The notes beneath the pieces were generated by a model. The model was not told the DNA's origin. It worked only from the letters and a program-made list of their open reading frames with translations, and did not search any database. Below are positions 1-62,491 of a DNA stretch of 64,000 nucleotides, piece after piece. This DNA is from Macrostomum lignano (lineage: Eukaryota), in the NCBI GenBank assembly GCA_002269645.1, contig NIVC01003274.1:62001-126000 (forward strand), given 5' to 3'. Numbering within the stretch: the stretch's first letter is position 1; every line of letters begins with the position of its first letter. Made by a program: the position numbers and the translations under genes.

Positions 1-964
1 CTGCGGCTCCCAGACTCCGAGCTGCTCAGTTCGACTCGTGGATGGCAGCAGACGAGAGGCTGAGCTGGTGAGCGACTGGCCGGCCTTGCCTGACTGATTT
101 TCCACTTTGAGGCTGAGATCTCATGGCATTCTGCGATTTTCAGCTGTTCTCAAGACCTGGCAGTGATCGGATTCGAGTCACCCATTTTGAGTACCTTATG
201 GAGGAGACGGAAATTCCGCGGACTCTGACCTGCTGGCAGGGGGACCCAGCGGCTCTGCAGATTGAGAGGGAAATCGCTGTGGCATGCAAGTCTGGGGCAG
301 CCAATCTGGGGTTTTGCGAGTTCCCACCCGCAGCTGGCATTCAGGGCCCCGTACAGTTTTGGCCCTGTTTAAACCTCTTTATGTACTTTTATTTGCAGCT
401 TATGGTGGAAGCTTTACTCTGTCGGTCTCTCCGGTGTGGGTCTCCGGCAGGAAGGTTTTCTTAGAAACTGAAGCGCAGCGATTCTTTCCGGAGCCCAGGA
501 TTCAGTGTTCGATCAGGGCGGTGACGGAGCAGCCTTTGAAAGTGGAGAGCCAGGTGAGGACAGGTGCATTGTCTTTGAGTGAGCGATACCGCTGGCAGCA
601 CGAGTTGGTCTACAATCTGACCGCAACGCCACAACCCCAAGTTCCCAGTCACCGCGGCCTATCCTTACACAAAGCACACGTAAAATGCAGATACCCCTCA
701 TTCTGTGTCGTTTAACTTTCAGAACCGGTCTGTAGTGAAGGACAATAAAAGCCGGGTTCTGCTGTCAGTTCGCTCAAGGTTCAGCTTTCACGCATCGCTC
801 TCAATGCACGGAGGTCAAATTCTGTGCTGGGTGAATCTGACTGAGGATGAAAACTTGGTTGCTATGAAGTACAAGTTAATTCACATTGTAACGCAGATTA
901 GCGGTGAGAAATGAGCGAATTAAATTCAGACTTCCGTATCTCAGTATTCTGTGTTACCTCTCCC

Positions 965-1787
965 ATCACCCCTCACCTAGCCACCCCTCACCTAGCCACC
1001 CCTCACTCAGCCACCCCTCACCCAGCCACCCTCATCCAGCCACCCCTCACAAAGCCACCCCTCACCCAGTTACCCCTCACCCAGCCACCCCTCACCCAGC
1101 CACCCCTCACCCAGCAACCCCTCACCCAGCCACCCTCACCCAGCCACCCCTCACCCAGCCACCCCTCACCCAGCCACCCCTCACCCAGCCATCACTTACA
1201 CAGCCACCCCTCACGCAGCCACCCCTCACCCAGCCACCCTCATCCATCCACCCCTTACACAGCCACCCCTCACCCAGGCACCCCTCACACAGCCACCCCT
1301 CACCCTGCCACCCCTCACCCAGCCACCCTCACCCAGCCACCCCTCACCCAGACACCCCTCACCCAGCCACCCCTCACCCAGCCACCCCTCACCCAGCCAC
1401 CCCTCACCCAGCCATCACTTACACAGCCACCCCTCACGCAGCCACCCCTCACCCAGCCACCCTCATCCATCCACCCCTTACACAGCCACCCCTCACCCAC
1501 GCACCCCTCACACAGCCACCCCTCACCCAGCCACCCCTCACCCAGCCACCCCTCACCCAGCCACCCCTCGCCCAGCAACCCCTTACACAGCCACCCCTCA
1601 CCCAGCCACCCCTCACCCAGCCACCCCTCACCCAGCCACCCCTCACCCAGCCACCCCTCACCCAGCCACCCCTCACCCAGCCACCCCTCACCCAGCCACC
1701 CCTCACCCAGCCACCGCTCATCCAGCCACCCCTCACCCAGCCACCCCTCACCCAGCCACCCCTCACCCAGCCACCCCTCACCCAGCC
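965..1787. repeat. 15-bp minisatellite (CCACCCCTCACCCAG)n, ~55 units, intronic
   Basis: Period-15 repeat read directly. A shorter copy sits at ~41820-42005 in the equivalent intron of gene E. The minus strand is G-run rich. Confidence 0.97.
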
Positions 1788-2536
1788 AATCGCACGCACT
1801 GCAGAGCCGTGCCAGACGGCCGTAGACCTGGGCTCGAGTCCGCACTGGGAGGTGGGCCAGACCCGCCACATCGCAGTGACCTCCAGCGCCTGCAGCATCT
1901 GAAATGTGAGCCACAGCTGCCGGCTGCTGCAGGCTGATGGCGCTTCACCCGTGCCGCTCCGCAGAGTTGAAGTACGCTTGCACTGAGACTGGCCAAAGTG
2001 CTCAGAGAAGTGCAGAGCCTCACCTGTCCCAATCTGCACCCTCATTCGCATTGCAGCAGAGCAGCTTCAGCAGCGTTCACCAGCTGCAGGTGAGCAGGTC
2101 GATGGCTCACCAGAACTGGTCGGTTCGCTGTAGCGTCAACCAGTCAGGTGTGGTGTATGATGAGGCTGAGAGTCTGGAGCAGCTGCGACCGCCGATTTTC
2201 TGTGAGTGCCGGACAGTGCATGAAGCGATTCTGTGAACCTTTGTTTGAATGCGATTTCCAATTTCACTGCAGACCCGGAAAGCATTCAGGTAGATGCCAG
2301 CATTGAGAGCTCGCTACTGCACCTGGCTGTGGCTGCCTCTGACGCTCGGCCTCCAGTGTCATCTGTTGTCTGCCAGATCGCAAATTTCACTGTGAGTGCT
2401 TGATGCGAGCCCGAAAGAGGGCCGAATAAGCGCGCATGACAGTAGCGTGCAGATGCATCTCTTTGCTACCATCTTTAATATCTTTTCAATGTTAAAATGC
2501 TGTGATGAAAACGTTGCTTGAATTTTTACGAGGTGC

Positions 2537-3088
2537 TGACTAGAGAACCCAGGTGATTGACTAGAGAACCCAGGTGATTGACTAGAGAACCCTGGTGATT
2601 GACTAGAGAACCCAGGTGATTGACTAGAGAACCCAGGTGATTGTCTAGAGAACCCAGGTGATTGACTAGAGAACCCAGGTGATTGACTAGAGAACCCAGG
2701 TGATTGACTAGAGAACCCAGGTGATTGACTAGAGAACCCTGGTGATTGACTAGAGAACCCAGGTGATTGACTAGAGAACCCAGGTGATTGTCTAGAGAAC
2801 CCAGGTGATTGACTAGAGAACCCAGGTGATTGACTAGAGAACCCAGGTGATTGACTAGAGAACCCAGGTGATTGTCTAGAGAACCCAGGTGATTGACTAG
2901 AGAACCCAGGTGATTGACTAGAGAACCCAGGTGATTGACTAGAGAATCCAGGTGATTGACTAGAGAACCCAGGTGATTGACTAGAGAACCCAGGTGATTG
3001 TCTAGAGAACCCAGGTGATCGACTAGAGAACCCAGGTGATTGACTAGAGAACCCAGGTGATTGACTAGAGAACCCAGGTGATTGACTA
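2537..3088. repeat. 21-bp minisatellite (GGTGATTGACTAGAGAACCCA)n, ~26 units
   Basis: Period 21 read directly; absent from the equivalent intron of gene E. Confidence 0.95.
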
Positions 3089-4574
3089 GCGCCCTTCTTA
3101 CCCAGCCTTATTTAACCTAATACTTTAGACTAGTCTGATTCTAGCAAGACTTGAACCGGCCAGGGAGAATTGCATTGACTTGACGGGAAAGCTGTAGCAT
3201 AGGCCTGTGTCTTATTATTCTAACTTAAAGCCGTAGCTTTCAGATGCGCACTTGCGCCAGACTCGTGTGTTTGAGATGTGCGCTTGCGTCGTGAGCGCCA
3301 ATGTAATCTGTTGTCGGGGCAATGAGTGCAGGATTGAAGCCAGCCCCTGTAGGACAATGAGGAGAAATGTGAATCTTGAGCTCGATGTCAACTTGAGCAC
3401 CGGAATGGAACCAAGCGCTCAGCTGTGGACCAAGCTGACTCATTGGACTAAATTCAAAGTCAAATCTCAATAGCTGTCTTCATCCACAGAGTGTTGAGCT
3501 GACACCGATGCAACACAGCCACACCTGGCAGGCAAACGGCAGCATTACACCACCAGCGTGTGCATCGCTGAATAACGAATCGAATTTTCTCATCAACTGC
3601 ACTGCTCAGCAGGACTTCAATGGCTCAACGATTATTCAAACAAGCGAACAGGTCTCTCGAAACTGCCCCTCAAAGGAAACAGGTAACTCATTTTTCCCGA
3701 CGCTTCATGTAATAACAGCCACTCGCAAATAAAATATCGATAAAATATTAAAACAGAAAAATATTGTGTATTCAATGTCAATTCAAATGTCAATTCAAAA
3801 TGTCAATTCAAAGCTTTATACTTTCCAAAGCTTTTTTCAAAGCTTTTGGAATTTTTCAAACAAGCGAACAGGTCTTTCGTAACTGCCCCCCAAAGGAAAC
3901 AGGTTTTTTTTTACCGACACATAACAGCCAATCGCAAATAAAATGTCGTTAAAATAGTAAAACAGCAAAATATTATGTATTTACCTTTGTCAATTCAAAG
4001 CTCTAGACTTTCCAAAGCTGTAAAATTAAAGTACGATTTCCGACCGAAGAGTAACCTAAATTTCGCTATAAACTGGTATTGAACACAAAATATTAGTAAA
4101 CTGCAGCATTTAAAGAAATTGTCCCTGCATTCAACACAGCGTCTCAATAGCTGGATGCACTTCCAGAGGCCCTCCGTCAGGTCACGTTGTTCTTTATGTC
4201 TTCCGGGTCTTCAAATCGGGATCCTTTGAGAGCTATGGGGGACCTGCCAGAAAACGCAGGGGGCATGTCTGGTGAATAAGCTGATGGCTCAGCTCAAGCT
4301 GATGCGTTGTCGTGATGCAGCGATTGGGCATTGTTGCTCCCGCCGCATCCTCGGCATGAGCCTCTTCTTAAAGTGCTCTTCTTTCGTGATTGATGAGGCC
4401 TCGAGAATACAATTCTCGCTAGCGCTGGGAACCTGGCTAAAGCTCTTTGTTTTACTTTTATTTCAGATGAAGATGGAAGTCTCACTCTATCGGTGTCTCC
4501 GGTGTGGGTCTCGGGCATGAAAGTTGAGTCAACGGGTACGGGTTTCTGCCAGACTCACTTTGCTTAAATGTTAA

Positions 4575-4579
4575 TCTAC

Positions 4580-4653
<74 letters not shown>

Positions 4654-4738
4654 ATCTTAGTTAGTTAGTTAGTTAGTTTGTTAGTTGGTTAGTTAGTTAG
4701 TTTGTTTCTTTGTTTGTTTGTTAGTTAGTTTGTTAGTC

Positions 4739-4779
<41 letters not shown>

Positions 4780-4965
4780 GTTTGTTTGTTTGTTTGTTTG
4801 TTTGTCAGTCAGTCAATCACCCACTCAAGTCAGTCAGTCAGTCACCCACTCAAGTCAGTCAGTCAGTCACCCACTCAAGTCAGTCTGTCAGTCACCCACT
4901 CAAGTCAGTCAGTCAGTCACCCACTCAAGTCAGTCAGTCAGTCACCCACTCAAGTCAGTCAGTCA

Positions 4966-5005
<40 letters not shown>

Positions 5006-5130
5006 CCCACTCACTCAAGTCAGTCAGTCAGTCAGTCACCCACTCAAGTCAGTCTGTCAGTCACCCACTCAAGTCAGTCAGTCAGTCACCCACTCAAGTC
5101 AGTCAGTCAGTCACCCACTCAAGTCAGTCA

Positions 5131-5170
<40 letters not shown>

Positions 5171-5215
5171 CCCACTCACTCAAGTCAGTCAGTCAGTCAG
5201 TCAGTCAGTCAGTCA

Positions 5216-5255
<40 letters not shown>

Positions 5256-5522
5256 CCCACTCACTCAAGTCAGTCAGTCAGTCAGTCAGTCAGTCAGTCA
5301 GTCAGTCAGTCAGTCGTCAGTCAGTCAGTCACCCACTCACTCAAGTCAGTCAGTCAGTCAGTCAGTCAGTCACCCACTCACTCAAGTCAGTCAGTCAGTC
5401 AGTCAGTCAGTCAGTCAGTCAGTCAGTCAGTCAGTCAGTCAGTCAGTCAGTCAGTCAGTCAGTCAGTCAGTCAGTCAGTCAGTCAGTCAGTCAGTCAGTC
5501 AGTCAGTCAGTCAGTCAGTCAG
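4575..5522. repeat. Compound microsatellite (CTAT)n-(TTAG)n-(TTTG)n-(CAGT)n with interspersed CACCCACTCAAGT units
   Basis: Direct reading; ends just before the acceptor of the last exon. Gene E has a short (CAGT)n at ~43215-43299 in the same position. Confidence 0.95.
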
Positions 5523-6240
5523 CTGTTCACCTTGCAGAGAGTGTCCCGGTCCCTATTAGCCGCAGTGGCTGCTCAGCGTAGAGGCGGCGGCGCACTTCGG
5601 ATGCAGCCGCTGGCAGCCGCGGCCTCCGCGGGCGCCGGCAGCAGCGCGTACGACTACCCGTCCACGAATGCGACAGCTCAGGGTAGCAGGAGCCACAGCG
5701 AGGCCGGAGAGTCCAACAACATACCCAGTGTCTACCTGGTGCTGACTCCGTCGAGGAGGTCTCAGCAGCAGCAGCAGCTGGTCAGCAGCTTTGAGCCGAG
5801 GCAGCAGAGCTGAGAGATGGCTATCTTTTAAATCGTTTCCAACTCAAAAACTACAGTCTAAAAAATCTCTACTTGTCAATTTTATAGTTCGACGGGTTAT
5901 CAGAGGTTGTAGCCGGCGAACGGGGACAAAATTATTTTTATGAGTCTTTAGTGAAATCGAGTACTTTTCTGCTTCTTTAAAATGATTATTTATAAAAAGT
6001 AAATACAATAAAATAAATTATTGCAGAACATTGTCTTTCCTGACAAATAGAGAAGAAAATAAAAGTCGATCAAGAAAGGAGACAGATTCTATCGCAAAAT
6101 CAAAGGTGCACAAACTCCAAATTCGGGACTGAAAGCTTATTTAATAATTTCAGCTGAAGGTGCGCGTTGAACATTTCGTCTGTTACCCTCTGTCAGTAGC
6201 AGGCAGCCCTGATTATGCCAGTGTGGTTTTCGTCTATGAT

Positions 6241-7419: not shown

Positions 7420-7706
7420 CTGTGGCGAACTTTAAGCGACATTGTCACACAACCGGAGAGAGGCATACAAGCGCGCGGATACGTACACAGATATACGCAC
7501 AGGCACACACACACACAATTTTATTTATGGTAAGGCATGTACACTTCCCTGTGCCTTGGGTGTTGGCCCTCAAGGCAATTAATTGCACCAGCAGAGCTAA
7601 GCCGAGATTTCAATTTAACCCCAAATTAATGTGACTGCACTTGGAATCGAGCCTGGGCCGTTGGCACATCAAAAGCGCCGCGCTAAACCACTAGGCGACA
7701 GACCCC
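7420..7706 (-). mobile_element. tRNA-derived SINE, family 1 (internally deleted copy)
   Basis: Minus strand begins GGGTCTGTCGCCTAGTGG (A-box-like) ... GGCTCGATTCC (B-box-like). Body is homologous to the copies at ~23881, ~50100 and ~61656. Confidence 0.75.
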
Positions 7707-12550: not shown

Positions 12551-12619
12551 TCTATTGCGCTTTTTTTATGTTTAGCAGTTTTTTTGTTTTTAAGGTGTTT
12601 TAATAAAAAAATTATTTTG

Positions 12620-26080: not shown

Positions 26081-26873
26081 TTATTTATTACGCAGTTATA
26101 TGTAGTATTCACTGCTATCTGAAGACTTAGCAACTGAATAACTTTTTTCAAGTTTTTGCAAAATCTATTGTACATTCAATTGTATCGTCTAAAACTTTCG
26201 CTGTACTGTAAATAAAAAAATCGTAAAATGGTAAGTTGTACTTGCTTTAGGATTAGATAATTTAGACTCATACCTCGTTTCTGCGGAATCTGAATTTAAA
26301 ATTATAGAGAAGTTGATTTCAGTAGTCCCGAAGGAACATGCACGATCGTCTTTGCAACTATAGAATCATCCTGACGCATCTGAAACTTGTAATTTTAGCT
26401 TCAATATTGCAAACTAGACAGCGCAACGGCGACTATAATCAAATTCATAACTACAAAAAAGCGTACAACCAGAAATTCAGTTTGGGTTGTTCCTGCCTCG
26501 ATGCTGCTTTCGAATTAAAGGTTACATAATGATCTGGCTGTCACAAACAGTAAGCATCTGTGACGGCAAGAAACACTGAACTTCGCTAGCTGCAGGTAAA
26601 TTTAAGGCGTGATAAATTTCTGCCATCCAACAATATTATCAGCTGAAAGCATAATCCAAGCCAAGTTGCTCAACAAGAAACGAAAAAGAATACCAGATGG
26701 ATCACAATCTTGTATGCATTCTGGTGCTGTTACTGAGCTCAAGAATTGCATGCAATGCTCTGCTCTGCACTGATGCAAGTCACGAGAAGGGTCAGCTGAG
26801 TTACTTACTGCCTTTTGAGCCTTTCATTCATGCCTCAGAAAATTTAGCGAATCCTTTGCGATAAATGTTTTAG

Positions 26874-42000: not shown

Positions 42001-43551
42001 CCCAGCCACTCACTCGCACTGCAGAGCCGTGCCAGACGGCTGTTGATCTGGGCTCGAGTCCGCACTGGGAGGTGGGCCAGACCCGCCACATCGCAGTGAC
42101 CTCCAGCGCCTGCAGCATCTGGAATGTGAGCCACAGCTGCCGGCTGCTGCAGGCTGATGGCGCTTCACCCGTGCCGCTCCGCAGAGTTGAAGTACGCTTG
42201 CACTGAGACTGGCCAAAGTGCTCAGAGAAGTGCAGAGCCTCACCTGTCCCCATCTGCACCCTCATTCGCATTGCAGCAGAGCAGCTTCAGCAGCGCTCAC
42301 CAGCTGCAGGTGAGCAGGTCGATGGCTCACCAGAACTGGTCGGTTCGCTGCAGCGTCAACCAGTCAGGTGTGGTGTATGATAAGGCTGAGAGTCTGGAGC
42401 AGCTGCGACCGCCGATTTTCTGTGAGTGCCGAACAGTGAATGAAGCGAGTCAGCTGTGAACGCTTTGCTTGAATGCGATTTCCAATTTCACTGCAGACCC
42501 GGCAAGCATTCAGGTAAATGGCAGCATTGAGAGCTCGCGACTGCACCTGGCTGTGGCTGCCTCCGACGCTCGGCCTCCGGTGACATCCGTGAAATGCTTA
42601 ATTTCGAGTTCTATTGTGAGCAGTAGCTTTGATATTTGTTGTTGGTTTTTCTGCTTGAAATTATTCGCAAAAATTCGAACAATTTATTTTCTTCCTGTCT
42701 CCAGCAAGTGACTCTGCACAAGCAAAGCGATGCCAACACGTGGAGTTTTGATAGCGATGGAGGTCCAATGAATGTTTTTTACAGAAGGCAGCACCTCGCT
42801 GCATCGAACATCACTATCTACTGCACTGCCCATCAGGGGTCAACGAATGGCAACCTGATATTTCAGAGCCACAGCTCGAAACAAATTTACGTAGCTGAAT
42901 CGATTGGCACTACGGATCTGCCAAGCACTCAATCAGTGAAGGCTGTTGAGTCAAAGGGTATGGGGCTTGAGTCGCACTCACTGTTCTAACATGTTTATTG
43001 AGAACATCGGAGCTAATCAACCTTCAAGAAACACACTAGCTGGTAAAATTATTGCTGCAGGTCCATTCTCAACCGTGTACGCCTTTCCACTGTCGCACCT
43101 GCTCGTTGCGTCCGCTTCGGTGATAGCCGTAATTGTGATGGTTGGCATTGCCTCAGCTGGGATTGCCTGGGTAAATAATACCTTTTCTGGATAGGTACAG
43201 TGGTAGCTATCACTGTCAGTCAGTCAGTCAGTCAGTCAGTCAGTCAGTCAGTCAGTCAGTCAGTCAGTCAGTCAGTCAGTCAGTCAGTCAGTCAGTCAGC
43301 TGTTACCCTTGCAGAGAGTGTCCCGGTCCAGATTAGTCGCACTGGCTGCTCAGCGCAGAGGCGGCGGTGCTCTTCAGATGCAGCCGCTGGCAGCCGCGAC
43401 CTCCGCGGGCGCCGGCAGCAGCGCGTACGACTACCCGTCCACGAATGCGACAGTTCAGGGCAGCAGGAGCCACAGCGAGGCCGGAGAGTCCAACAACATA
43501 CCCAGTGTCTACCTGGTGCTCACTCCGTCGAGGAGGTCTCAGCAGCAGTAG
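39040..43551 (+). CDS. Family-1 receptor E: signal peptide, discoidin-like domain, 4 Ig-like domains, TM, tail with YDYP and ITIM-consensus SVYLVL; apparently intact, ~730 aa
   Basis: 14 exons: 39040-39127, 39204-39392, 40251-40402, 40502-40577, 40725-40897, 40974-41115 (GC donor), 41202-41356, 41584-41770, 42025-42191, 42277-42421, 42497-42615, 42705-42957, 43061-43170 (TM LLVASASVIAVIVMVGIASAGIAW), 43315-43551. Phases join without stops. Confidence 0.82.
39460..40240. repeat. 41-bp variant of the intron-2 minisatellite (AGCACTCTGAGACAGTRTGAGACCAGCTACTGTAGCATTCA), ~19 units
   Basis: Period 41; the first ~29 nt are shared with the 39-bp unit. Confidence 0.95.
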
Positions 43552-44339: not shown

Positions 44340-47300
44340 TCAGGGTGGTCCGCCGGTCCGTCCTGCAGCGTGATCTTCCGTAGGGAAGAAAGTGGCTCGT
44401 CTAGTCGCCCGAAGGAACTGGATGAGCCGTGGGATGCTGTCGGGCTGGCAGACCTCGTCAATGGACGGGTTCGGCCCGAGGTAGCGTAGCCGGTCTCTGT
44501 TAAAGAAGGGGCAGTGACAGACAAAGTGCTGAGCATCTTCATTGTCGCACTCGCAAAAGGGGCAAATTTCGCTCTCGAGGTCGCCTCGGAGGAAGCAGTG
44601 CCTGGCGAGGTAGCCATGGCCGGTAAGGGTCATGACAAGGGCTCGAATATCCTTCCGATTCTGGTTCAGAAGGATGTTTCTGAGCCTGTGAGACGGGCAA
44701 GGAACCGCGGCACGAGATTGCCGGCAGTTTTGGGTGCCCGCCCATCTGTCCCTGTGGAGGGAGTCAGCCCAGTCGTCGATCTGACGATTGATGACTGTCA
44801 AGGGCATAGGGACCAGGGGGGCAGGGCCGAAGAAAGAGCCAGAGCCGCCCCTCTTGGCGAGGGTGTCTGCCAGCTCGTTCCCCGGAAACCCTGCGTGCCC
44901 TGGGATCCACTTCAGCCTGACAGTATTGCTTCTGGCCAGGAGGTTGAGCTGCCGGGCGCAGTCGGCGACTGTCCGGGAGTTCGTTGTGGTGTGGCAAAGG
45001 GCCTGTAAGGCCGCTTGGCTGTCGGAGTGGATGACAATAGTCTTTCCTCTCGTAACCTTGGCGTTCAGCTCTGCAGCGCAAGAGCTGATGGCAAGGACTT
45101 CGTTCTGGAAGACTGTGGAGAGTCTACCAGTGTGCTGGGCATGCGTGGCAATTACGCGGCCGTTGATGATGGTGCAGACCCCAAAACCGGCGCGACCGTC
45201 TTTGATGGATCCGTCCGTGTAGCAATGGACCTCCTGGAAATTCCAGTGGTCATTGGCAGCATCCCTAGAGGGGATGGTGACCTTGTAGCGCTGAAAGAGG
45301 TTGAGAGTGCGGGGTTCGCCGTCAGATAGGACGTGGAGCCCGCCGCTGTCTCTCAAGTCCTTGAGGCAGAGGTCAGCGTGGGGCAGAAGCTTGCGCTTAG
45401 CCATGGCCCTATGGGGCTGGATTCGAATACCAGCGTCAGCTAGACGGCGGGCAGTCTTAGCCGCTTCCCTGCGGACAAAGATGTCCAGCGGAGGAATGTT
45501 GAGGAAGGCGTTGAGGCCATCGTAAGGAGCAGACGGAGGGGCGCTCATGATCGTGCGACATGCGCGCCCTTGTGCTCTCCTGAGAGCCTCTAGACAGGTC
45601 TTTATCTGCAGGGCGCTAGCCCAGATCAGGCCGCCATACGAGATAGCGGGCCTAACCATTGCAGTGTAGATCCACCAGAGGCGCTTGGGGGTGAGCCCCC
45701 AGGTGGTGCCGACAGCCCTGCGCAGTTGCGCGAGGACTGTGAAGGCCTTTTTGGCTTTTGTTTGAACGTGGGGTGACCAGTTCAGCCTGTGGTCCAGGGT
45801 AATACCCAGACATTTAGTCTGCTTGCAGAAGGGGATTTCCCTTCCGTAAAGCGTGAGCGGCCGAATCTGCCACTTGGTCCTGCTGGTGAACATGATCGCT
45901 GCGGTCTTAGTCTCAGAGAGCCTTAAACCACAGCGGTCCGCCCATTGCTCAGCGGCGTAGATAAAGTTCTGAAGAAGGTCCCTGAGGGTATCAGGGGACG
46001 GACCAGATGCCACCGCGGTGACATCGTCCGCATATCCAACTTTCAGAATGGGGTCAGGCCGAACATCCCGGAGGAGCTCATCGATGACCATATTCCAGAG
46101 AACTGGAGACAGCACCCCACCTTGCGGGCTACCTTTGCAGACGGGGACCGTCCTCTGGTAGCCCAGCAGACTGGCGGTGGCCGTGCGATGGCTGATCATG
46201 TACATGATCCACTGGTGAGATGTGAGTGCGTTTGCCTCTCACAAAGAGCTCTTCGGAACGCCTCAAAGAGGACGTTATCGAAGGCGCCAATGATGTCCAG
46301 GAAGATCCCCAGAGCAATGCCATTACCAAGCACGACCTTCTCGAGTTTATCGACCAGGACGTGCAGCGCGCTTTCAGTGGAGCGACCCGCCCGAAAAGCG
46401 TGCTGGTTCTCGCTGAGAGGTGCGCCAAAGCACCAGTCTCTCCATCAGCTTGACCAGGGAGGAGGTCAAGCTGATCGGTCTGAAGGATTTGTTAGAATGG
46501 TAGTCCGGGCGGCCTGGCTTAGGGATAAAGATCACCTTTGCCTCGGTCCATGCCTGTGGGACATAACCAAGCGAGCGTGATGCATGCCCGAAGAAGGCTG
46601 CAAAGTTTGCGCAGGAAGCCTGGGCATTTAACCGCCTCTCTTAGGAGGGTCGGTACAATGCCGTCGGGTCCTGGGGCTTTGAAAGGCTTGAAGGAATTTG
46701 CCGCTCTCACGATGCAGTCCTCCGTGATGATAGAGGCAGCCAGCGCGTGACCTCCCTCCGAGTGATCCGGAGTGGTCTGGTTAGCTGGCTCGTTGGGGAA
46801 AAACGCAGTGAGCATTACATCAAGCGTTTCCCCTGGGTTGTCCGTGGACGTACCGTCGGTGCGTTTGACCGAGGAGAGCTTAGACATTTTGTCCAGCGTG
46901 AGCGCTTTCACAACTCTGGAGGTGGGGCGTGAGCCCTCTAGCTCCTCACAGTATTGTCGCCATTTTTGAGCCTTTGCATTCCTAACCTGCCTTTTAAACT
47001 CATGGATTGCTTCATGATAGGCGTTGGTCTGCAGGGCTCTTAGTTTTAGTTGCTCTGCGGTGGAGTCTCTTAGCCCTGCGACGGAGGTTGCCGAGCTCGG
47101 GATTCCACCACGGCGCCGATTTTTTCCCTTTATAGGCTTTTTAAAGGGCAGGACGCCTCAAAGGCGGCGGTTAGCGTCTCTGTCAAAACAGTCGCGCACT
47201 CATCCGCCTCTCGGCACGACGTGATCGTGAATGGTTGGCCAGGAGACCGATGGAATTCCTTCAGGGTGAGCCCGAAGGTTTCCCAATCAGTATTTCTGGC

Positions 47301-48034
47301 GTTCCGTCTCCACGTAACACGAGTTGCGCTACGCGCGGCCATTAGGTTGAAGGAGATGAACTTGTGATCCGAGAGTGAGGACACTGGAAGCACCCGCCAC
47401 GCCCCAATACTCTGGTAGAGTCTGGGCGTTGCGAGCGTAGCGTCGATCACCTCCGACCACCGTCCGTTGTCAAAGGTAGGGGTGGACCCAGAGTTGCAGA
47501 ACTCGAGGGTCGTAGAGGCAACGTAGGCTAGGAGGTCTTCGCCTCTCTGATTAATGCCAGTGCTGCCCCAGTGAGTGTGGTGGGCGTTGATGTCGCCGGC
47601 AACCATGAGCTCGTAGTTTTACCAGAGCTACCAGAGCAGAGCTCTACCAGCGTAGCGAGGGCTCTGGGGACGACCGCAGCATCGCCTGGTAGGTAAACCG
47701 AGGCAATGAGGGTGGTCTTCCCAGGAAGAAGGTCATCGGATTGGATGACGCAGATGTCCCTGTTGGACAGGTCCGATCTGAGCCACGCACTGAGCGTTTT
47801 GCTCGCAAAGATGCAAGCTCTGGGAGGCTGGTTGGCCTCGCGAGGGTAAGTATAAAAACAATTGTAGCCAGCAGGGGCGTTTTGAGGCTTACCTCTGAGA
47901 GTCCAGGGTTCCTGGACGAGGATGAGCCCCGGCTTGTCGAGCTCGGCGTAACGCATAAGGTTGACCGAGGCTGCGACGCAGTGCTGCAGATTAATCTGCA
48001 GGCAATGGATTCCCTGGTTGCTGATCATTATCAC
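44340..48034 (-). CDS. LINE ORF2 (endonuclease-reverse transcriptase-RNase H-zinc knuckle), frameshifted in several places
   Basis: APE motifs LQINLQH, ILVQEPW, GDINAHH, SDH; RT motifs KAPGPDGI, PQGGVLSP, YADD; RNase H motifs YTDGS, SDSQAAL, WIPGHAGFPGNELAD; C-terminal CPFC..EDAQHFVCHC. Split over ORFs 47528-48034, 47130-47606, 46519-46911, 46226-46453 and 44340-46205. Confidence 0.9.
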
Positions 48035-49496
48035 GCAGTTGGGGAATCGTTGAGCAGGTCATCCTCCTCCTTTTCAGTGGTGGGTGACCCGCAGACCTCC
48101 ATGGGAGTTTCAGCGTCCTCAGCAGTTAGGGTGGCTGTGGAGTCCTCCGCGGACGTGAGCCCAGCGTGGACGTTACCGTCGCCTCCCCTGCGTGCTTCGG
48201 TGCTGTCACTGCCCGTCCCCTCTGCCTCGTCGGTCAGGTCGATGCGGGTGGCGCCAGCCTCCTGGTGAGTCACAGACTCGAACCAGTCGGTCGGAGCCTC
48301 CCCGCTTAGAGTCTGGCCTTCTGGCTGTTGAGGTGGAGCGCGAGAAGCGCGGGCCCGCTCACGATGCGCACGAAGGTTCTTGGCCTGGTCCAGCGCGCGC
48401 TGGATCAGGCCGGACCTCCGGGTGCTCCTGGCGGGTCTGCGATTGTGATTTCCGGTTTCAGCAGCGCGAACTGCCTTACCGGGCATAGGATCGGCCGTTT
48501 GCCTCGGCTTCTTTGCCGGAGGAGCCTGGGCCCCAGTTCCGGTTTCGGAAGCTTTGGCATTCTTGGCTTCATCAGCTTTCCGCTCCTCGCAACGGAGGAT
48601 GGTCAGCTGAGTCAGACCAATATGAATTGTGGAGTTAGGCGGCAAGCGCTTAGCCCAGTCATCAGAGAGCCCTAGGATCACCGTAGCCCCCTTCTCCTTG
48701 CGGGAAGTGGCGTGGTGTAGGAGCCCGTTGACCTCAAGGTCGGGGTGCAGCTTTAGCAATATTTGCCTAAGCTGATCTCCGGACTTAATGGCACTGCCGG
48801 CCGGGATCCAGACGCGAAAGCGCTGGGTCTTCTGTCGTTCGCCCTCGCTGGCGAAGACGAGCTTGCCGAGCTTCTTGGGCCAGTTCAGCTTTGGCAGAAG
48901 CTCGCGTAGATTGCGGCTGCTCTCCTCCGAGCTGCACCAGATGAAGATGCAGCCGTCGGTCTTGGCAGACTTGACCACGCTCACAGGGCGGCCCGCCAGG
49001 AGCTGGTCGATGAGCGCAGCATCGATGGTGCGCCAGGCACTGTCGAGCCCGTCGGCCGTGAGGTCCTGCTCTTCCCCGAAGACGATGACCGCCGGTTGGA
49101 GCTTGACCTTTGAGGCGTAGTTGGTGGCGGCGGTTCCCGAAGGCCCGGCCGCGCTTGTAGCATGTATACTGGGTGGCTCACCAGCGGGGGTTGTATCCTG
49201 GGGGGCAGGGGTTGCTGTGGTTCCTTTCGGCCCAACAGCAGCCCGCCCTCCCTAGGTTTCCCCTCCGCCGGTGGCCGGCCCGCAGTACCCCGTAGTCGCC
49301 GTCGCCGCTCGTTGCGGCGTTGGTTGCGGGTGCGTCGGGCTTCAGCGGAGGGCCCGGTTGCGCGTGCGGGCATGTCACCGGCCGAGCCGGCGGCAAGCCC
49401 ATCTGCCCCCGGTGGGGCGGCGCTGGTGCCAGAGTCACCGGCCGGAGTTGCCGGGGCCCCGGCTTCAGCGGGGTTGAAAGAGGCGGATGACGCCAT
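48031..49496 (-). CDS. LINE ORF1 (gag-like), one apparent frameshift near 49150
   Basis: ATG at 49496 (MASSASFNP..), Arg/Ala/Pro-rich N-terminus, continuing into ORF 48031-48984 directly upstream of ORF2. Confidence 0.7.
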
Positions 49497-50099
49497 AGCT
49501 GAAAGCGGGAAGGAGTGAGCTGAGTCACAAAAGAAAGAGGAAAGAAGAAAAAGAAAAGGACCGCTAGCGACCGGACAACCCCCGGCCTTCCAGCCCATCG
49601 GCACGGTCAAACACCTTAGGCATTAGGGGGTACGTTAAGCAGTACCACGGCCTGCAGGCTGGCAAGCCAGACCCGCATACCCAAGTTCGGCCGAAGCCAC
49701 TGGATGGGTCGCCAGCGTCGGAGCCCAGTCTGTCCAGCAGCCCTAGGGTCTGCCTTGAACACACGCGGGGACGAGTACCCTGGGTCGACTTGTGAAACAG
49801 CGTGAGGGGGGGTCTGCGGCTGCCAGCGGCAAATAGCGGGTGCAGACCTCCCTCTCCAGCCTTGACCTGCTGAAGATAGGGGCAGGCGCGAAGCATCGCA
49901 GACCGTAGCCCATAGGCCTGGTCTGTCTCATACTTCACTGGCGTGCTGAATACACCTTCGCGTGCGAACACGAACACGGTACGACATTATGAATTATGAA
50001 TATTTTAATGAAACATAGGATTAATGTTTGAGATGATTAGAGTTAGTTTTGCGTCTGGTTTCATTTTTTTACGTTAGAATTGTACCATTTTCTATTATA

Positions 50100-52509: not shown

Positions 52510-56414
<3,905 letters not shown>

Positions 56415-57127
56415 ACTATTTCTATTGTCAATCGCATTCAAGTACCGCCTCTGCATAGGTAATTCTGCAAACTTAGTTTTTTTGATTTAGATAAAACTCA
56501 AAAACTCTAAGTACTTCAGATTAATAATGATGCCTAGTAAAAGGCTGAAATGATTTGTGTTTTATTAACGTATTGATTTTCAGTTTAGTGCTAATCATAT
56601 TTACTATCGATATTATTCATGTATATAAATTGAGTATAAGCCAGTCGGTGTTTATCATTATTTTTTAACTAAACACACAAATTGATCAATTCATTTTTAC
56701 AGTGTAAACGGGTTCAATTTTTTTATTAGCATGAGACATTTTAAAACACTGAGAGGAGCTATTTACTACCTACCAGGCAGATGCTTGGCTTGAAGTAAAT
56801 CCTGATTTCTGCGTCAGCTGCTTTGGCTATTACAGAATACAGAGTCACAGAGTAATAAATAAGCCAAACTGACTAAATTCAAATGTAAGGATTCAAAACA
56901 TTCACATAAATGCTTAAAATAGCCTTAGTAAAAACAGTCCATTTTTCAGGGACATTAACTGTAGCAGCAGTTCAAGGCAATCGTCGGAGAGGCGGCATAT
57001 TGATGTAAACAAAGCAGGCAGTCATAAAATCTTCAAGTCCAAGCTGCATCCATCGCACACTGCGTAAAACTTTTAAGTAAAAATCGACATTAGCGAAAGC
57101 TTTCTTTAGCTAAATATTAGATTTTCA

Positions 57128-60100
57128 ATGAAGGATTTTTACAAATTGCTGCAGTTGTTGCTGCTATGCAACACGAGATTCACCGCCAGCAACCCAGACT
57201 GCTCCTCCACGAGTCAAGCCGGTGAGGCCAGCGAATTTAGCACGTAAAATGCATATCAACTCCAGCTAACACAGAGATTGAAAGTAAGCACTATCTACTC
57301 TTTTCCAGTGACAGTGCAGCTGAGCAGGGCTGACGTTCTGCGCACCTGGCAACCCAGCGGTGCGCACTGCCGTTGGTGGGAGAGTCGACAGTCAGAGACA
57401 AACCGATTCCCTGCTGCTGTGCGGTCCGGGCCTCGGTGGCTTGTGATGCAGCTGACGCAGCCGATGATGCTGGAGGCGGTGAGCGTGCGAGACTGGGGTG
57501 AGTGACGCTGACCGACTCATTCTCATGATGCATGATGAGGCAGAGGGAGCCTTGGACCCAAAGTGTGAGACAGTGTGATGCTAGCATCTAATTAGCACTC
57601 TGAGACAGTGTGAGACCAGCTAGTATCTAATTAGCACTCTGAGACAGTGTGAGACCAGCTAGCATCTAATTAGCACTCTGAGACAGTGTGAGACCAGCTA
57701 GCATCTAATTAGCACTCTGAGACAGTGTGAGACCAGCTAGCATCTAATTAGCACTCTGAGACGGTGTGAGACCAGCTAGCATCTAATCAGCACTCTGAGA
57801 CAGTGTGAGACCAGCTAGCATCTAATTAGCACTCTGAGACAGTGTGAGACCAGCTAGCATCTAATTAGCACTCTGAGACAGTGTGAGACCAGCTAGCATC
57901 TAATTAGCATCTAATTAGCACTCTGAGACAGTGTGAGACCAGCTAGCATCTAATTAGCATCTAATTAGCACTCTGAGACAGTGTAAGACCAGCTAGCATC
58001 TAATTAGCACTCTGAGACACTATGATACCAGCTAGCATCTAATAAGCACTCTGAGACAGTGTGAGACCAGCTAGCATCTAATTAGCACTCTGAGACAGTG
58101 TGAGACCAGCTAGCATCTAATTAGCACTCTGAGACAGTGTGAGACCAGCTAGCATCTAATTAGCACTCTGAGACAGTGTAAGACAAGCTAGCATCTAATT
58201 AGCACTCTGAGACAGTGTGAGACCAGCTAGTATCTAATTAGCACTCTGAGACAGTGTGAGACCAGCTAGCATCTAATTAGCACTCTGAGACAGTGTGAGA
58301 CCAGCTAGCATCTAATTAGCACTCTGAGACAGTGTGAGACCAGCTAGCATGTAATTAGCACTCTGAGACAGTGTGAGACCAGCTAGCATCTAATTAGCAC
58401 TCTGAGACAGTGTGAGACCAGCTAGCATCTAATTAGCACTCTGAGACAGTGTGAGACCAGCTAGCATCTAATTAGCACTCTGAGACAGTGTGAGACCAGC
58501 TAGCATCTAATTAGCACTCTGAGACAGTGTGAGACCAGCTAGCAGCCAAGCACTCGTGTTGCAGATGGCCAGTGGCACGCAGCAGCTCCAGTCGGCTCGC
58601 CTGTGTCAGCGGTCGGAGCCTCGAGCCTCCCGCTGGAGCTGCAGCTGGAGGATCCGTGCCGCGCCAGCTGGGAGGCCTTCGGCAGCAGCGACCGCTGGAG
58701 GCAGATTGGGGTGAACGGAGTAGATCAAGTAAGCTGCTTCATTTGAATTATCTTATCATAATAATGAAATTAATAAATCCATCCATTTCACACTTCAGCC
58801 CGTAGTTCGTTTCCTTGTGCTAAGTAGCTTGAGAACTGCTGGACTTAGCTGGAGGGCCGTCTCATTAACAGGTTCCAAAGAGACTTTTAAATTTTATGAA
58901 GTTATCACTGAATCATAGCTTATTGTGAATTAAGTGCTTTAGAAGCAGGTGCAATTTTTCTTGTAGGTCGCTTTCTACCGCTGAGCCTCACAGTAACTGA
59001 CAACCGTTTTTGCCCTCTGAGAGACCTGTCCGCCTTGCACGATGGAGTTGAAGCCTGCTTCTCTGTTTCAAGATGTACCAGCGAATCAATTCAATGCTTC
59101 TTTAACCTAAGCAATGGCGCAACTCTGGAGCCGAGACTGGTCTGCTCAACTCTTCTTTATAGCGTGCTATCAATACTTCTTCTTGCACTGACTTGATACA
59201 AAATTCGCTTTTTCAGCTACGAAGCCAAAAGCAGCAAGCTGAATTCGAGTTCACAGCCAATTTCTCGCTGCACGGAGCACTGCTCACCTGTCTTCTGCCT
59301 GATCGGCCAGGGATTCGAATCGAGCAGACCATTGGAATCGTTGGTGAGAAAGAAGTGTCTGCCTGAGTTAAAAAATGTATTTTAAGTCCGCTTTGAAGAT
59401 TACAAAGCGAAACATGCACTTTTCAGTCACACCAAGTGTTGAACTGTCGTTATCAACCGTGTGGGTGATTGGTCGCAGAGCCAAGGTGCACTTTTTCTCA
59501 AGCCCAGCTTATCCTCCTCAGCAGCACAGGTGCCAAATTATCTCTGGCAGCAGCACCTGGGAACTGAATGAGCATTTTAGTAAGGTAAGTAGTATTATAT
59601 TATTGTTGAAAATGCTGTACCTTGCCCAATCATGTACTTTTCCATGAAATAAACTTCCAGACTAGACAGGCTTATATCAGGAACAGCATCAACATGTCGC
59701 TAACTGAAGTAAAGTCTGAATTTGTTGTCACAGTCACGTCAGACATGCTGAATGGCACCGTGAGATGCAGTAGCAGCTATAAAAGTACAAGTCAAGGAGA
59801 AGTCATGAAAGATATCGTTATTTCAAGCATCAGCGGTAAGTGCTTGCATTAGAGAATCTCCTATACGCCCGATTGGAAGAGCCATAAAATCTCCTCATTT
59901 CAGAGCCTTGCACAACTGCCATTCATGTAGACAACATCCAGTACTCGTATCAGGTTGTACAAGTGACGTCACTGAAGTGCAGCATTTGGAATGTTCAGCA
60001 CAGCTGCTGGCTTGTCAAGCCCAAAGAAGATGTCCTGGAGCATCTAATTAAGCTTGCTGTACGGTTCTTTGATTTTGTAATAATGCTTTTTATTCAGAAG

Positions 60101-62491
60101 TTACTGCAACAATATCTGATGTCTTCTATTGCAGCAAGACGGCTTCAGCAGCACTCACAGGTTGAATATTATGAAACAAGAGCAGAAAAGAGACTGGCTA
60201 GTGAGATGCAGCGTTAATCAGTCGGGAGTGACATACCCGGATGTGGAAATTGAGTTAGCAAGCGATGATGACAGTGAGTCAAACGATGCATTCAATCACT
60301 TTTAATTGTTCCAATGCAAGTTCAAAGGTTTTTTACCACTTGAATCTACACTACACGTAGCTACATTTGTACTCGTATTAATACGAGCGTAATGCAAGAG
60401 ACCTGCGAGCACCCCGACGCTACGTCTTGGGCGACCTTGTCCCGCAATCAGCTGCCCGTTCCGCTCACTCCTGATCACATACGAGCGTACGAGCGCCTCA
60501 ATACTGCACACAGGCACGCACTCATACGCACGCTCCCACAGGGTGTACAGCGGCCCTGACTTTCTAAGCCTCAGGCATGTACCTCTCTGTGCCTTAAGGG
60601 CTGGTCCTCATGAGCACTGAGCACGTTTGCTCTACCCACCTCCAGAATAAAAACAACTGAGCGTTTTTAATCTAATAAACTGTACTCGTTCGTATTCTGT
60701 TGGCTGCCATTGAAGCGACTTTTGATAACAGTCAACCCACAGCCAGCGTGGAGTCGACCCAAATTAATTGGTCATTCCACATGTCAGCACTCGAGAGTGC
60801 TTACTTAAACAACTATTCTTAATCGTTAAATTTTCAGGTAGTGTATCTTCATTTGCTTATTACCCCTCGTAACTTTGAGGTTGTAACTGTTGCGAGCCTG
60901 TGTTCGATTTGTAACTACTCTGCCACTTATCAACCCAACTGTCTTCAGCTTTCTACTATCAGTGGGGACTGAGTTGCATAATTTTGCTGATTTTATCTGC
61001 CCTCGGCCTCATCCTGAGCTGCATGATTATTCGAAGAATTCGCCGCGCTAAATCAGCAAAGCCAAACTCGACTTCAAGTAGAAGTTCGACATTCCCAGGA
61101 CGACGTACCCTCCTCTCGAGTGCGGCCACCTCGCCGCAGGCACAGGTAGGGCTAGCCACAGATTTAGTTTGTACATTAAAACACGCATGTAAGTGTCAAA
61201 TACTGGTGTTTTGATGAAGAATAGCTGTAAACTTAAAAGAAAATTCTAGCTACCAGGGGTTGTTTTGGCTATTCGCTCAAGCACTTTTGCTTCTGGCTTT
61301 TGCCTGAAACTGAAGCTCTTTCTTAGATTAGCGTGGACACAGATTGCCTGGTAAATAGCGCTGCTTATCTGATCAGATTTATGTGTGCACAAATGCAAAC
61401 TACTAATTAGAACTTCCCTCAGCCTGAACCGCAATATTACCTAAGTCCATATGACTGTAAAATCCAGCAGTGAATTCCGGTGCATCTAATATCTGCTTTG
61501 TTACAGCTATATTTATTTTTGTTTCTTTAAAGGTTCAATTCCCATTCTAAATAGTAATATAGTAGAGATACTCGTATTCTGTTGAGTTTGTGAAATGAGT
61601 TGCGATTGCTTTCACTCAAGCGTGCTATGGCCTGTACGAGCACGGGTATTGTATGAAGCCGTAGCCCATTGGTCAATCATGGATGAATAAAACCATGGGT
61701 CTAGTGCGGCGCTCTGATGTGTCAGCGGCCCAGGCTCGATTCCAAGTGCAGTCACAATAATTCGGAGCTAAATTGGAATCTCGGCTTGGCTCTGCTCGTG
61801 CAAGTAACGCCCCTGATCAGGGCCAACCCCCAAAACACAGTGAAGTGTACATGCCTAACGATAGATAAAGTTAGGGCTGCTGTACACTCCTGTGTGAGTG
61901 AGTGCCTGTGCGTTTGACTGCGTACGTATCTGAGCGCTTGTGTGCATGCAGCTCAGGGGAGTCGGCGGAATGGGCAGTAATGCCTCTCGCCGGTTGTGTG
62001 ACAATGTCGTCTAAAGTGCACCATGGGTGCAAACAGCTCCTTGCCTGTAACAAAAAAATGGCCCTTATATTCCGTAGCCCAGAATCATGAGCAGGCTGAA
62101 CTGCTAGATAGACAAGGAAAAAGCTGGCGTGATCAAAGTAATCTGTTAAATTTCTCGCCTCTAAGGCCTACTAAAGTATCATGTTAAAATTCTTCGAAAG
62201 AAATGACTCTGAATAACATAAATCAATCGTTTCCACCCCCAGCGAGCGGCACCACAGCTCAATCATCATCAGGTTGATTCCTCGCAGTCAGTGAGCAGAG
62301 GCGGTCCACCACCTGCAGAAAGCAGCTGCCGCGGCTATGAAAGCCAGCCAACCAGCAGTCAGGAGATCGACCCAGTGTACGAAGAAGTATCTTTGTGTGT
62401 CTACAGGCCGGTGCACCCTCTGCCGCGGTACCCACGGCAGTTCTCAGAAAAAAATTGTCGACACGCCTACTATTCCAGTCGGTTTGATTGA
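57128..62491 (+). CDS. Family-1 receptor C2, near-identical paralog of C1; apparently intact
   Basis: Same exon structure as C1 (exon 1 57128-57221, exon 2 57309-57497, TM exon 60949-61145, last exon 62243-62491). Confidence 0.8.
57565..58542. repeat. 39-bp intronic minisatellite, ~25 units (intron 2 of C2)
   Basis: Same unit as in C1 and D. Confidence 0.97.
61656..62056 (+). mobile_element. tRNA-derived SINE family 1 (intronic in C2, syntenic with 23881)
   Basis: Same head insertion and body as the 23881 copy. Confidence 0.75.

Follow-up and report, generated by a model that had tools for sequence, protein, structure and literature searches.

A tandem gene complex of predicted immunoglobulin-type receptors and linked CUB-like proteins found only in the flatworm Macrostomum lignano

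The complex described here lies on contig NIVC01003274.1 (C3274) of the flatworm Macrostomum lignano (assembly GCA_002269645.1). The window, a stretch of 64,000 nucleotides (positions 62,001 to 126,000 of the forward strand), is eukaryotic DNA rich in micro- and minisatellites and contains six genes for predicted immunoglobulin (Ig)-type receptors (R1 to R6) and three genes of a second family (L1 to L3), all on the plus strand. An earlier note, made from the letters alone, had proposed nine co-oriented genes of two families, with intact, truncated and stop-containing copies side by side and possibly a flatworm as their source. Spliced models and the origin of the contig bear this out: R2, R5, R6 and L3 are open, R1, R3 and R4 contain TGA codons, and L1 and L2 are incomplete. 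The peptide motifs quoted at that time are likewise present on the plus strand, namely CSIWNVxHSC (22216, 33218, 42111 and 59978), SVSPVWVSG (422, 4490, 28032 and 41225) and RCSVxQSGV in the form RCSVNQSGV (2126, 22442, 42346 and 60204). In 64 kb translated in all six frames, the expected number of copies of a given 9-residue peptide is ~1e-7, and four copies of a motif are not due to chance.

R genes have 12-14 exons, as modelled from database protein models together with donor and acceptor scoring. An exon with the ATG and the signal peptide (SP) is followed by three exons (N1, N2 and N3) for an N-domain of ~145 amino acids, by 3-4 Ig-like domains (D1 to D4) of ~95 amino acids, each split over two exons (a and b), and finally by one exon each for the transmembrane (TM) segment and the tail. 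R2 and R6 (12 exons) and R5 (14 exons) are open from Met to stop, and their intron phases alternate, with phase 1 between domains and phase 0 within a domain. Such a phase-1 module arrangement is classical for genes of the immunoglobulin superfamily (IgSF). The genes start ~1.7-2.7 kb upstream of the first Ig exon, the SP and the three N exons having gone unrecognised in the earlier note.

The remaining R copies show different kinds of damage. R1 has its SP and N1 exons upstream of the window, at C3274:~60771 and 60937. In the window it keeps part of D1a, then D1b, D2a, D2b, D3a, D3b and D4a, and its D4b and TM exons have been replaced by ~3 kb of repeats that precede the tail exon. A TGA follows 'ACSI' in D3a (1900-1902), where R5 has TGG, and a stray 17-amino-acid fragment of D2a is found at 4475-4525. 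R3 keeps the SP, a partial N1 (26873-26956 only), N2, N3, D1 and D2, without minisatellite, D3, TM or tail; downstream of it no TM-like exon with homology was found. Its in-frame TGA in D1b (27934-27936) recurs on the collinear contig C2252, and the splice sites flanking D1a of R2 are conserved in R3. R4 contains a single in-frame TGA, in D1a (32188-32190), where C2252 has TGC (Cys) and database model P0016 has Cys. With no such stop on the collinear contig, this codon marks either a null allele or an erroneous base. The first impression that R4 lacks a TM exon was overturned by a hydrophobicity scan, which located one at 34264-~34397, followed by the tail. The in-frame stops of R1, R3 and R4 are all TGA, each one substitution away from what relatives have at that place, a TGG or TGC codon or, as read at the residue level, Arg.

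The L family has five coding exons, of which L3 holds the complete set. L1 is without the internal exon that corresponds to 55452-55599 of L3, and in L2 only exons E1 and E2 are left. Directly after the last L2 exon lies a mariner/Tc1-like open reading frame (ORF) of 179 amino acids (37510-38049), for which Pfam gave no significant match and which may have truncated the gene. The first coding exon of both L1 and L3 starts exactly at a splice acceptor and is without a genomic ATG. An ATG does stand at the end of the M. lignano spliced leader (...TTGCATG; PMC8629364), and MNFQR are the first residues of database model P0042. These three observations indicate that the L start codon is probably donated by spliced-leader trans-splicing, giving a normal signal peptide. 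The L exons and the following R exons were also considered as one gene, which was rejected since each R has its own ATG/signal-peptide exon and since a stop codon closes L behind its hydrophobic C-terminus.

Table 1. Genes and other features of the window (positions in the window; all coordinates from spliced models or alignments as stated)
Feature	Position	Strand	Description	Exons	Evidence
R1	1..5750	+	Receptor pseudogene, R5-like; 5' end ~1.2 kb upstream of window	tail 5538-5750	tblastn with R5 protein
L1	14150..18741	+	CUB-like + CTLD-like gene	14150-14202 (signal peptide, no genomic ATG), 16622-16939, ~17568-17830, ~18266-18741	P0042 mapping; splice chain; acceptor ttgcag followed by AACTTC
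R2	19455..24705	+	Intact, 12 exons	SP 19455-19548, N1 19636-19824, N2 20803-20966, N3 21037-21109, D1a 21205-21377, D1b 21455-21581, D2a 21665-21822, D2b 21908-22073, D3a 22142-22296, D3b 22373-22511, TM 23188-23384, tail 24457-24705	Splice chain Met to stop; matches M. lignano database proteins
R2 homogenised tract	19627..20930	+	N1, intron with minisatellite, most of N2		Sliding-window identity; BLAST
R3	26697..28465 (end ~28465)	+	Truncated receptor pseudogene		tblastn; splice chain
R4	30378..34875	+	Receptor gene, four Ig-like domains		Exact P0016 mapping; splice chain
R4 equivalent tract	30536-31854	+	Equivalent of R2 tract
L2	36684..37482	+	Truncated L gene	E1 and E2 only	tblastx against L1; tblastn
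R5	39040..43551	+	Open, 14 exons	SP 39040-39127, N1 39210-39392, N2 40278-40402 (shortened, diverged), N3 40505-40577, D1a 40725-40897, D1b 40974-41115, D2a 41250-41356, D2b 41584-41770, D3a 42025-42191, D3b 42277-42421, D4a 42497-42615, D4b 42705-42957, TM 43061-43170, tail 43315-43551	Exact P0016 mapping; splice chain Met to stop
R5 equivalent tract	39196-40358	+	Equivalent of R2 tract, partly diverged
L3	52505..56414	+	Complete	52505-52557 (signal peptide, no genomic ATG), 53205-53522 (CUB-like), 54035-54276, 55452-55599, 55994-56414 (CTLD-like, acidic/Ser linker, hydrophobic C-terminus)	Splice chain open to stop; P0042 mapping; acceptor at first coding base
R6	57128..62491	+	Intact, 12 exons, tandem duplicate of R2	57128-57221, 57309-57497, 58565-58728, 58799-58871, 58967-59139, 59217-59343, 59427-59584, 59670-59835, 59904-60058, 60135-60273, 60949-61145, 62243-62491	Splice chain Met to stop; 95-99% identical to R2 unit
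R6 equivalent tract	57301-58706	+	Equivalent of R2 tract
Non-LTR retrotransposon	44340..49622	-	Between R5 and L3; outside R and L families		Pfam endonuclease, RVT_1 and RNase_H matches

Two duplications were evident from self-BLAST of the window: 1-6240 matches 40831-44054 (84-96% identity), and an 11-kb unit, 14079-25197, matches 52434-62998 (95-99%). More divergent copies appeared in translated comparison as short conserved blocks with gaps of 60-110 nt between them, which is an exon pattern. L-to-R gene pairs, ~700 bp apart, were duplicated as a unit. On C3274 the array reads R1, L1, R2, R3, R4, L2, R5, retrotransposon, L3, R6 and R7, all in plus orientation. Downstream of the window at least 6 more L genes follow in tandem at 136-152 kb and 3 further L-exon matches at 161-170 kb, again on the plus strand, and the 29 kb upstream of the array on C3274 contain no R or L family sequence. 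Between 32 and 156 kb of C3274, 7 R genes and at least 9 L genes were mapped, and the cluster, which continues past both ends of the window, comprises 7 R and at least 12 L genes.

The search for more copies that the earlier note had called for showed that the linkage of R and L is general. L exons occur on 13 of the 13 contigs that carry N1 exons, at interleaved coordinates, and L-only arrays were found on C271, C413 and C3412. Genome-wide there are at least 104 D2/D3 exon matches, 66 N1 matches and at least 146 L-exon matches. Because the assembly is redundant, the distinct loci are fewer than these raw counts, perhaps a handful of clusters with a few dozen R genes.

The same redundancy raises the question of whether the tandem copies are collapsed or mis-joined haplotypes. 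The Mlig_3_7 assembly holds 180 Mb in blocks of at least 95% identity, and only 64% of its bases were found error-free by REAPR (PMC5730564). However, the copies can be told apart by their sequence, by microsatellite length and by the genes between them, and contig C2252 (1-43,538) is collinear with 19,322-63,995 of the window at 96-99.6% identity. Its gene order, R2-R3-R4-L2-R5-transposable element-L3-R6, is identical, retrotransposon included. The older model P0016, based on the ML2 assembly, also matches R4, a single L2 exon and R5 exactly, thereby spanning R4-L2-R5. Since C2252 was assembled independently and keeps the same order, a trivial assembly artefact is ruled out, and we give any version of this explanation a negligible chance.

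That the R genes encode Ig-type domains, as had been claimed, was verified by structure prediction rather than by Pfam. The Pfam Ig hidden Markov models (HMMs) gave no match above threshold to raw exon ORFs or spliced R proteins, and spliced R2 had no match; below threshold, C2-set_2 alone appeared (E 0.0024-0.015, 16-18 bits against a cut-off of 21 bits). A PDB sequence search with the paralog P0004 gave nothing meaningful. The label 'Ig-like domain-containing' in UniProt is that database's own assignment. AlphaFold2 (AF2), run on P0004 with a family alignment of 16 sequences, modelled D2-D3 as all-beta with a predicted local distance difference test (pLDDT) score of 75-90, while D1 and D4 fell below confident modelling. 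When this model was compared with the PDB by Foldseek, more than 1100 matches were obtained at E<=0.001, and the top 50 listed were all IgSF chains. SIRP-gamma was the best of them (8e-8), and Necl-4, CD22, SYG-1/2, CD155 and antibody and TCR chains were among the others. In the R sequences the Ig-type Cys pair, spaced by ~50-60 residues, and the C-strand Trp that follows its first member at a distance of ~10-14 residues can be seen by eye, as in D3 of R2 ('...LKCSIWNVQHSCW...WLVRCSV') and D4 of R5 ('...VKCLI...IYCTA'); pairs are present in D1 and D2 as well. Judged by modelled structure and gene architecture, and not by HMMs, the repeated domains of R have an Ig fold. With a signal peptide, an orphan N-domain, Ig-like domains, one TM helix and a tail with Tyr motifs, R proteins are predicted type-I membrane receptors.

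The tails do carry the Tyr motifs that had been reported, of which only one type fits the immunoreceptor tyrosine-based inhibitory motif (ITIM) in its strict form, (S/I/V/L)xYxx(I/V/L). This is the R5/R1 type, in which R5 has SSxYDYP and SVYLVL and the R1 tail exon also encodes SVYLVL. R2 and R6 instead carry an acidic YEEV (E[TI]DPVYEEV) together with LCVYRPV, and YEEV recurs in the distant paralog P0034. In P0011 and P0013 the tail contains YEDPDxYxxI, in R4 YTQV and YVN, and in P0004, P0018 and P0024 an acidic stretch with GHYDxDG..FV.Y. The strict ITIM is absent from R2/R6, P0004, P0011, P0018 and P0034. No charged residue was seen in the TM segments of R. SH2 domains, including tandem-SH2 ORFs, are present in the M. 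lignano genome.

L proteins had been described as lectin-like, which applies in part: their N-terminus is CUB-like, and a C-type-lectin-like domain (CTLD) is a marginal call for the second domain. The AF2 model of L has a mean pLDDT of 50, with moderate values (~55-80) over residues 22-148, which form an N-terminal beta-sandwich. Foldseek matched this half to the CUB domains of Neto2 (1.4e-4) and neuropilin-2 (CUB1; 5.5e-4, TMt 0.57, root-mean-square deviation 5.2), and further to C1r CUB2, TSG-6, the spermadhesin aSFP and PCPE-1, although Pfam CUB gave no match to L at E<=10. At the moderate confidence of the model, the N-terminal half of L has a CUB-like fold. For the second domain, a profile of 9 paralogs was compared with PDB sequences, and 23 of 23 matches were CTLDs aligned in register. 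CD69 was the best (a marginal E = 0.011), the others including DC-SIGN/DC-SIGNR, NKR-P1A and PLA2R; among the Foldseek top 50 for the L model there was no CTLD. A divergent C-type-lectin-like domain is thus suggested, if marginally. Because the EPN, QPD and WND sugar-binding motifs are absent from the alignment of nine L paralogs, it probably does not bind sugars in the classical manner. The protein ends in a Ser/acidic linker and a hydrophobic stretch of ~25 residues, which would fit a glycosylphosphatidylinositol (GPI) signal or a TM tail anchor.

A striking pattern was found in the N-domain. In a sliding window, the nucleotide identity of R2 with R4/R5 rises from a background of ~40% to 93-100% at ~9 nt before the N1 acceptor (19627), runs at ~100% into an intron with a 39-bp minisatellite of 22 copies (19907-20782), resumes after the repeat and collapses inside the N2 exon near 20930; R5 reaches 85-95% only in mid-N2. 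In BLAST, 19630-20944 matches 30536-31854 at 96%. In protein sequence, R2, R4 and P0011 share 92-95% identity over N1-N2, compared with 14-43% for the SP, N3 and D1-D3; the Ig domains among these paralogs are 14-40% identical. In R5, where N2 is diverged and shortened, N1-N2 identity is 76-78%. Genome-wide, 54 N1 exons are at least 95% identical. By contrast, identity of N1-N2 to an outgroup subfamily (P0034; C363, C1432) is only 31-35%. Members of this PAA83733.1-like subfamily, at C363:106900-108400, C363:123300-124800 and C1432:23700-25200, have a three-exon N-domain without minisatellite.

The intron is conserved to the same degree as the exons, and the domain is able to diverge, as seen in the outgroup; gene conversion within one subfamily is therefore the best explanation of the N1-intron-N2 pattern. 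Conversion may be favoured by the minisatellite, but a requirement for it is unsupported, as R1 and R7 combine short introns with N1 exons that are 100% identical. It was also considered that the N1-minisatellite-N2 block is an exon-carrying transposon, which is unlikely given that the tract begins ~9 nt before the N1 acceptor and ends in frame within N2, and that the outgroup has the same three-exon domain without the repeat. As to its nature, Pfam assigned the N-domain to no family (F5_F8_type_C reached E = 0.1 for one divergent member only). A discoidin/galactose-binding-like domain was rejected, since hhalign against genuine M. lignano discoidin domains gave a probability of 0.2%, the same as negative controls. 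The R N-domain is an orphan domain.

Both families appear to be confined to one species. The draft spliced R2 protein matched M. lignano proteins only, and of the 25 clusters returned by an exhaustive phmmer search of 1.84 billion representatives, 24 were from M. lignano and one was a fungal low-complexity repeat protein, a spurious match. All 31 matches of the R family profile and all matches of the L query were likewise from M. lignano. By these searches R and L are found only in M. lignano, and R genes are not conserved orthologs of adhesion molecules such as nephrin/IrreC or nectin, a prospect that the earlier note had itself raised. Its statement that no flatworm locus of this type had been described also stands, in that a full-text literature search found no description of the R or L family.

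With several damaged copies in the window, the array might be non-functional debris, that is, decaying segmental duplicates in a repeat-rich, partly polyploid genome. Such a view would account for the pseudogenes R1 and R3, the stop in R4, the exon loss in L1 and the truncation of L2, for the retrotransposon and huge minisatellites within the cluster, for dN/dS (the ratio of nonsynonymous to synonymous divergence) values of 0.5-0.8, and for no transcript-based NCBI model having been found on this contig. The last point is not evidence of silence, because transcripts overlapping repeat annotation were left out of the GenBank transcript set (PMC5730564). In R2, R5, R6 and L3, moreover, the 5-14 exons are all open and their splice sites usable; at a paralog dS of ~0.1 this would hardly be expected without selection. 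A tail motif is also conserved between deep subfamilies. Transcript-based full-length GenBank models exist for R paralogs elsewhere (Mlig025426.g1/g2, Mlig016317.g1, Mlig028913.g1, Mlig007224.g1 and Mlig026732.g2), one of which falls within a paralogous cluster of R and L genes on C1776. A purely decaying array is improbable in view of these transcript-supported paralogs and of the three long multi-exon ORFs that are intact.

Divergence between copies was then considered at two levels. Among paralogs, dN/dS of Ig exons is 0.48 for R5/R1 and 0.70 for R4/R7, and that of the R2/R6 TM plus tail is 0.79; in this range (0.48-0.79) no gene-wide positive selection was seen. These values suggest that the R family evolves fast or under relaxed constraint. 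Between the window and C2252, the Ig exons show 0 synonymous and 1 nonsynonymous differences in R2, 0 and 6 in R4 and 0 and 1 in R5, while R6 is more diverged from its counterpart (pN about 3%, pN/pS 0.50). The comparison covers one laboratory line, and C2252 may stem from a duplicated chromosome instead of being allelic to the window; in that line there is no sign of hyper-polymorphism between collinear copies.

These data bear directly on the allorecognition analogy drawn in the earlier note, which they weaken. A self-incompatibility locus of the Hydractinia Alr, Botryllus fuhc or Ciona Themis type would consist of a polymorphic, linked R/L pair, acting as receptor and ligand to tell self from partner (sperm or tissue, for example). 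Two surface-protein families that are tightly and recurrently linked, with L-R pairs duplicated as a unit, would suit such a locus, as would an unusual IgSF that, like Hydractinia Alr, escapes Pfam. M. lignano is, in addition, an outcrossing hermaphrodite. On the other side, the polymorphism that had been named as a check amounts to 0-6 nonsynonymous sites per gene between collinear copies of R2, R4 and R5, with R6 at a pN of about 3%, and the distal N-domain is homogenised across paralogs (N1-N2 92-95%, against 14-40% for the Ig domains). The solitary M. lignano is also not known to show fusion or rejection biology. Given a constant distal head and so little difference between two collinear copies, allorecognition is disfavoured, and we consider it very improbable.

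Repeats of several kinds were recorded in the window. Minisatellites lie in introns and between genes, at 14244-16195 (28 bp x70, 98% identity), 9353-12551 (23 bp x139) and 2537-3089 (21 bp x26). Intron 1 of L1 and that of L3 contain different repeats, the 28-bp x70 array being that of L1. One 15-bp repeat has 55 copies in an intron of R1 (967-1788) and 13 in the equivalent intron of R5 (41820-42009). A dispersed repeat of ~350 bp, 81-87% identical and in both orientations, is present at 7458-7690, 23923-24275, 50085-50443 and 61704-62061, two of its copies sitting in the last intron of R2 and R6. The retrotransposon between R5 and L3 has its ORF2 split over several frames and occupies the same place on C2252. 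ARAGORN reported a tRNA-Cys-like sequence of 87 nt (anticodon aca) at 6836-6922 on the minus strand; it had no match in Rfam and is probably repeat-derived.

Taken together, the locus is best read as part of an M. lignano-restricted complex of two linked surface-protein families, shaped by tandem duplication, decay and conversion of N1-N2, and acting through a receptor mechanism; we put the probability of this reading at about 0.6. The complex evolves by tandem segmental duplication, by decay of copies (nonsense mutation, exon loss and transposon insertion) and by gene conversion. As to mechanism, the R ectodomain would bind a ligand at the cell surface, where the constant N-domain may engage a common partner. 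The linked L proteins would be the best candidates for this partner or for co-receptors, and the variable Ig domains might tune specificity or spacing. On engagement, the tail tyrosines, of the acidic YEEV/YxxI types and one ITIM type, would become phosphorylated and be read by SH2 proteins.

Several points weigh against this interpretation of the complex. R-L binding, Tyr phosphorylation and GPI anchoring are all inferred. Pfam recognises no R or L domain above threshold, the second half of L was modelled without confidence (pLDDT 25-55) and its CTLD assignment is marginal, and the N-domain, with the discoidin comparison at control level, was left unfolded by AF2 at a pLDDT of ~30, a result due partly to the target P0004 being without exon N3 and partly to the nearly invariant alignment there. 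Half of the R copies (3/6) and 2/3 of the L copies in the window are damaged, and no transcript-based NCBI model was found for R2/R6, for the L query or for this contig. The Ig-exon dN/dS of 0.5-0.7 fits relaxed constraint as well as fast adaptive change.

For the biological setting of the preferred reading, microbial or non-self sensing is ranked first, mating or gamete recognition second and adhesion third. By analogy an immune or non-self role is plausible. In its specific form, an innate immune receptor complex would use diversified Ig domains to bind microbes or parasites and signal through Tyr motifs, with L as a soluble or anchored lectin-type partner in recognition. A lineage-specific, tandemly expanded and fast-diverging family with pseudogenes would be expected in such a complex, and an IgSF fold with Tyr motifs (one fitting an ITIM, others acidic YxxV/I) and co-clustered CUB and CTLD genes point the same way; CUB-like and CTLD genes are typical pathogen-response classes in Caenorhabditis elegans. 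The CTLD-like domain, however, has no EPN, QPD or WND motif, the membrane-distal domain is constant rather than diversified, and dN/dS is below 1; this specific form is a tentative possibility.

The structural matches would suit a role in reproduction or adhesion just as well. R would then be nectin/SynCAM/SYG-like and L spermadhesin-type CUB proteins, at work in contacts between gametes, between sperm and the female tract or between cells, and diverging by sexual selection. Necl-4, CD155 and SYG-1/SYG-2 are among the matches of R, and spermadhesin aSFP among those of L. Species restriction and fast evolution also fit reproductive proteins, which evolve quickly in the genus Macrostomum. Against this, there is no sequence homology to any adhesion family, the IgSF matches from Foldseek are generic, and in place of PDZ- or 4.1-binding sequences the tails have Tyr motifs; we regard these roles as rather unlikely. 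Less likely again is a fully developed R-L partner system, in which L proteins would be the ligands or co-receptors of the N-domain kept uniform by conversion, variants of Ig domains and tail would diversify signalling, and the whole would have evolved independently in an immune or a mate- or gamete-directed role. If that partnership were real, it would represent an independent invention of linked receptor-ligand recognition genes, with a binding head kept uniform by concerted evolution while the stalk diversifies.

To our knowledge, no multigene surface-receptor system comparable to the vertebrate leukocyte receptor complex (LRC) or natural killer complex (NKC), to cnidarian Alr or to mollusc FREPs has been described in flatworms, and the R/L complex was therefore compared with these and other systems. 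Like R, Hydractinia Alr1/Alr2 are tandem, lineage-specific type-I membrane proteins with Ig-like domains that escape HMMs and with Tyr motifs, encoded by genes and pseudogenes in mixture. In Alr, however, the distal domain is hypervariable between alleles and binding is homophilic and allele-specific, whereas the distal N1-N2 of R is constant. M. lignano, moreover, is solitary, hardly any difference separates its two collinear copies, and R shares no sequence homology with Alr. LRC-type families (KIR, LILR, SIRP, fish NITR/LITR) share with R a multigene IgSF character, tails with tyrosine motifs (of ITIM/ITAM type in their case) and birth-and-death evolution with gene conversion, and the top structural match of R, SIRP-gamma, is one of them. 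R differs in having no homology to them, no charged TM residue of the kind that marks activating partners, an extra orphan N-domain and a strict ITIM in one tail type. The NKR-P1/Clr genes of the NKC are, like R and L, interleaved genes for surface proteins, and the second-domain profile of L matches NK-type CTLDs best, at a marginal level (CD69, NKR-P1A). There, both partners are type-II CTLD proteins known to interact; here an IgSF type-I protein is paired with a CUB+CTLD protein with C-terminal anchor, and their interaction is hypothesised.

Biomphalaria FREPs and amphioxus VCBPs resemble R in that a lineage-specific expansion joins Ig-type domains to a binding head of non-Ig type, and FREPs have been discussed in terms of gene conversion and of somatic or germline diversification. 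They are secreted and carry Ig domains N-terminal to a lectin head, whereas R proteins are membrane receptors with an orphan head. Nectin/Necl (SynCAM) and SYG-1/SYG-2 (IrreC/nephrin) have a similar ectodomain of 3-4 Ig domains with a single TM and rank high among the Foldseek matches, yet they are conserved orthologs across phyla, while R is multi-copy, has a different tail and has no detectable relatives outside M. lignano. The CUB-like and clec clusters of C. elegans recall L in being large, clustered, fast-evolving and secreted or anchored, some with both domains; they are not interleaved with IgSF receptors, and no homology to L was seen.

Because R and L have no sequence homology to these systems and lack several of their defining features, they are a new family pair of a known general kind and belong to none of the systems compared. 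What sets the pair apart is a conversion-uniform orphan head joined to diverging Ig domains, an obligatory co-clustering with a CUB-CTLD family, and L start codons that are probably supplied by the spliced leader. It offers a natural example of concerted evolution limited to one exon-intron-exon cassette with sharp boundaries, in genes that are otherwise almost unalignable. Represented in the assembly by at least 54 exons for the receptor head and at least 146 for L, these two always co-clustering orphan families provide an experimentally tractable candidate counterpart to the systems above, in a flatworm model for which transgenesis and RNAi are available.

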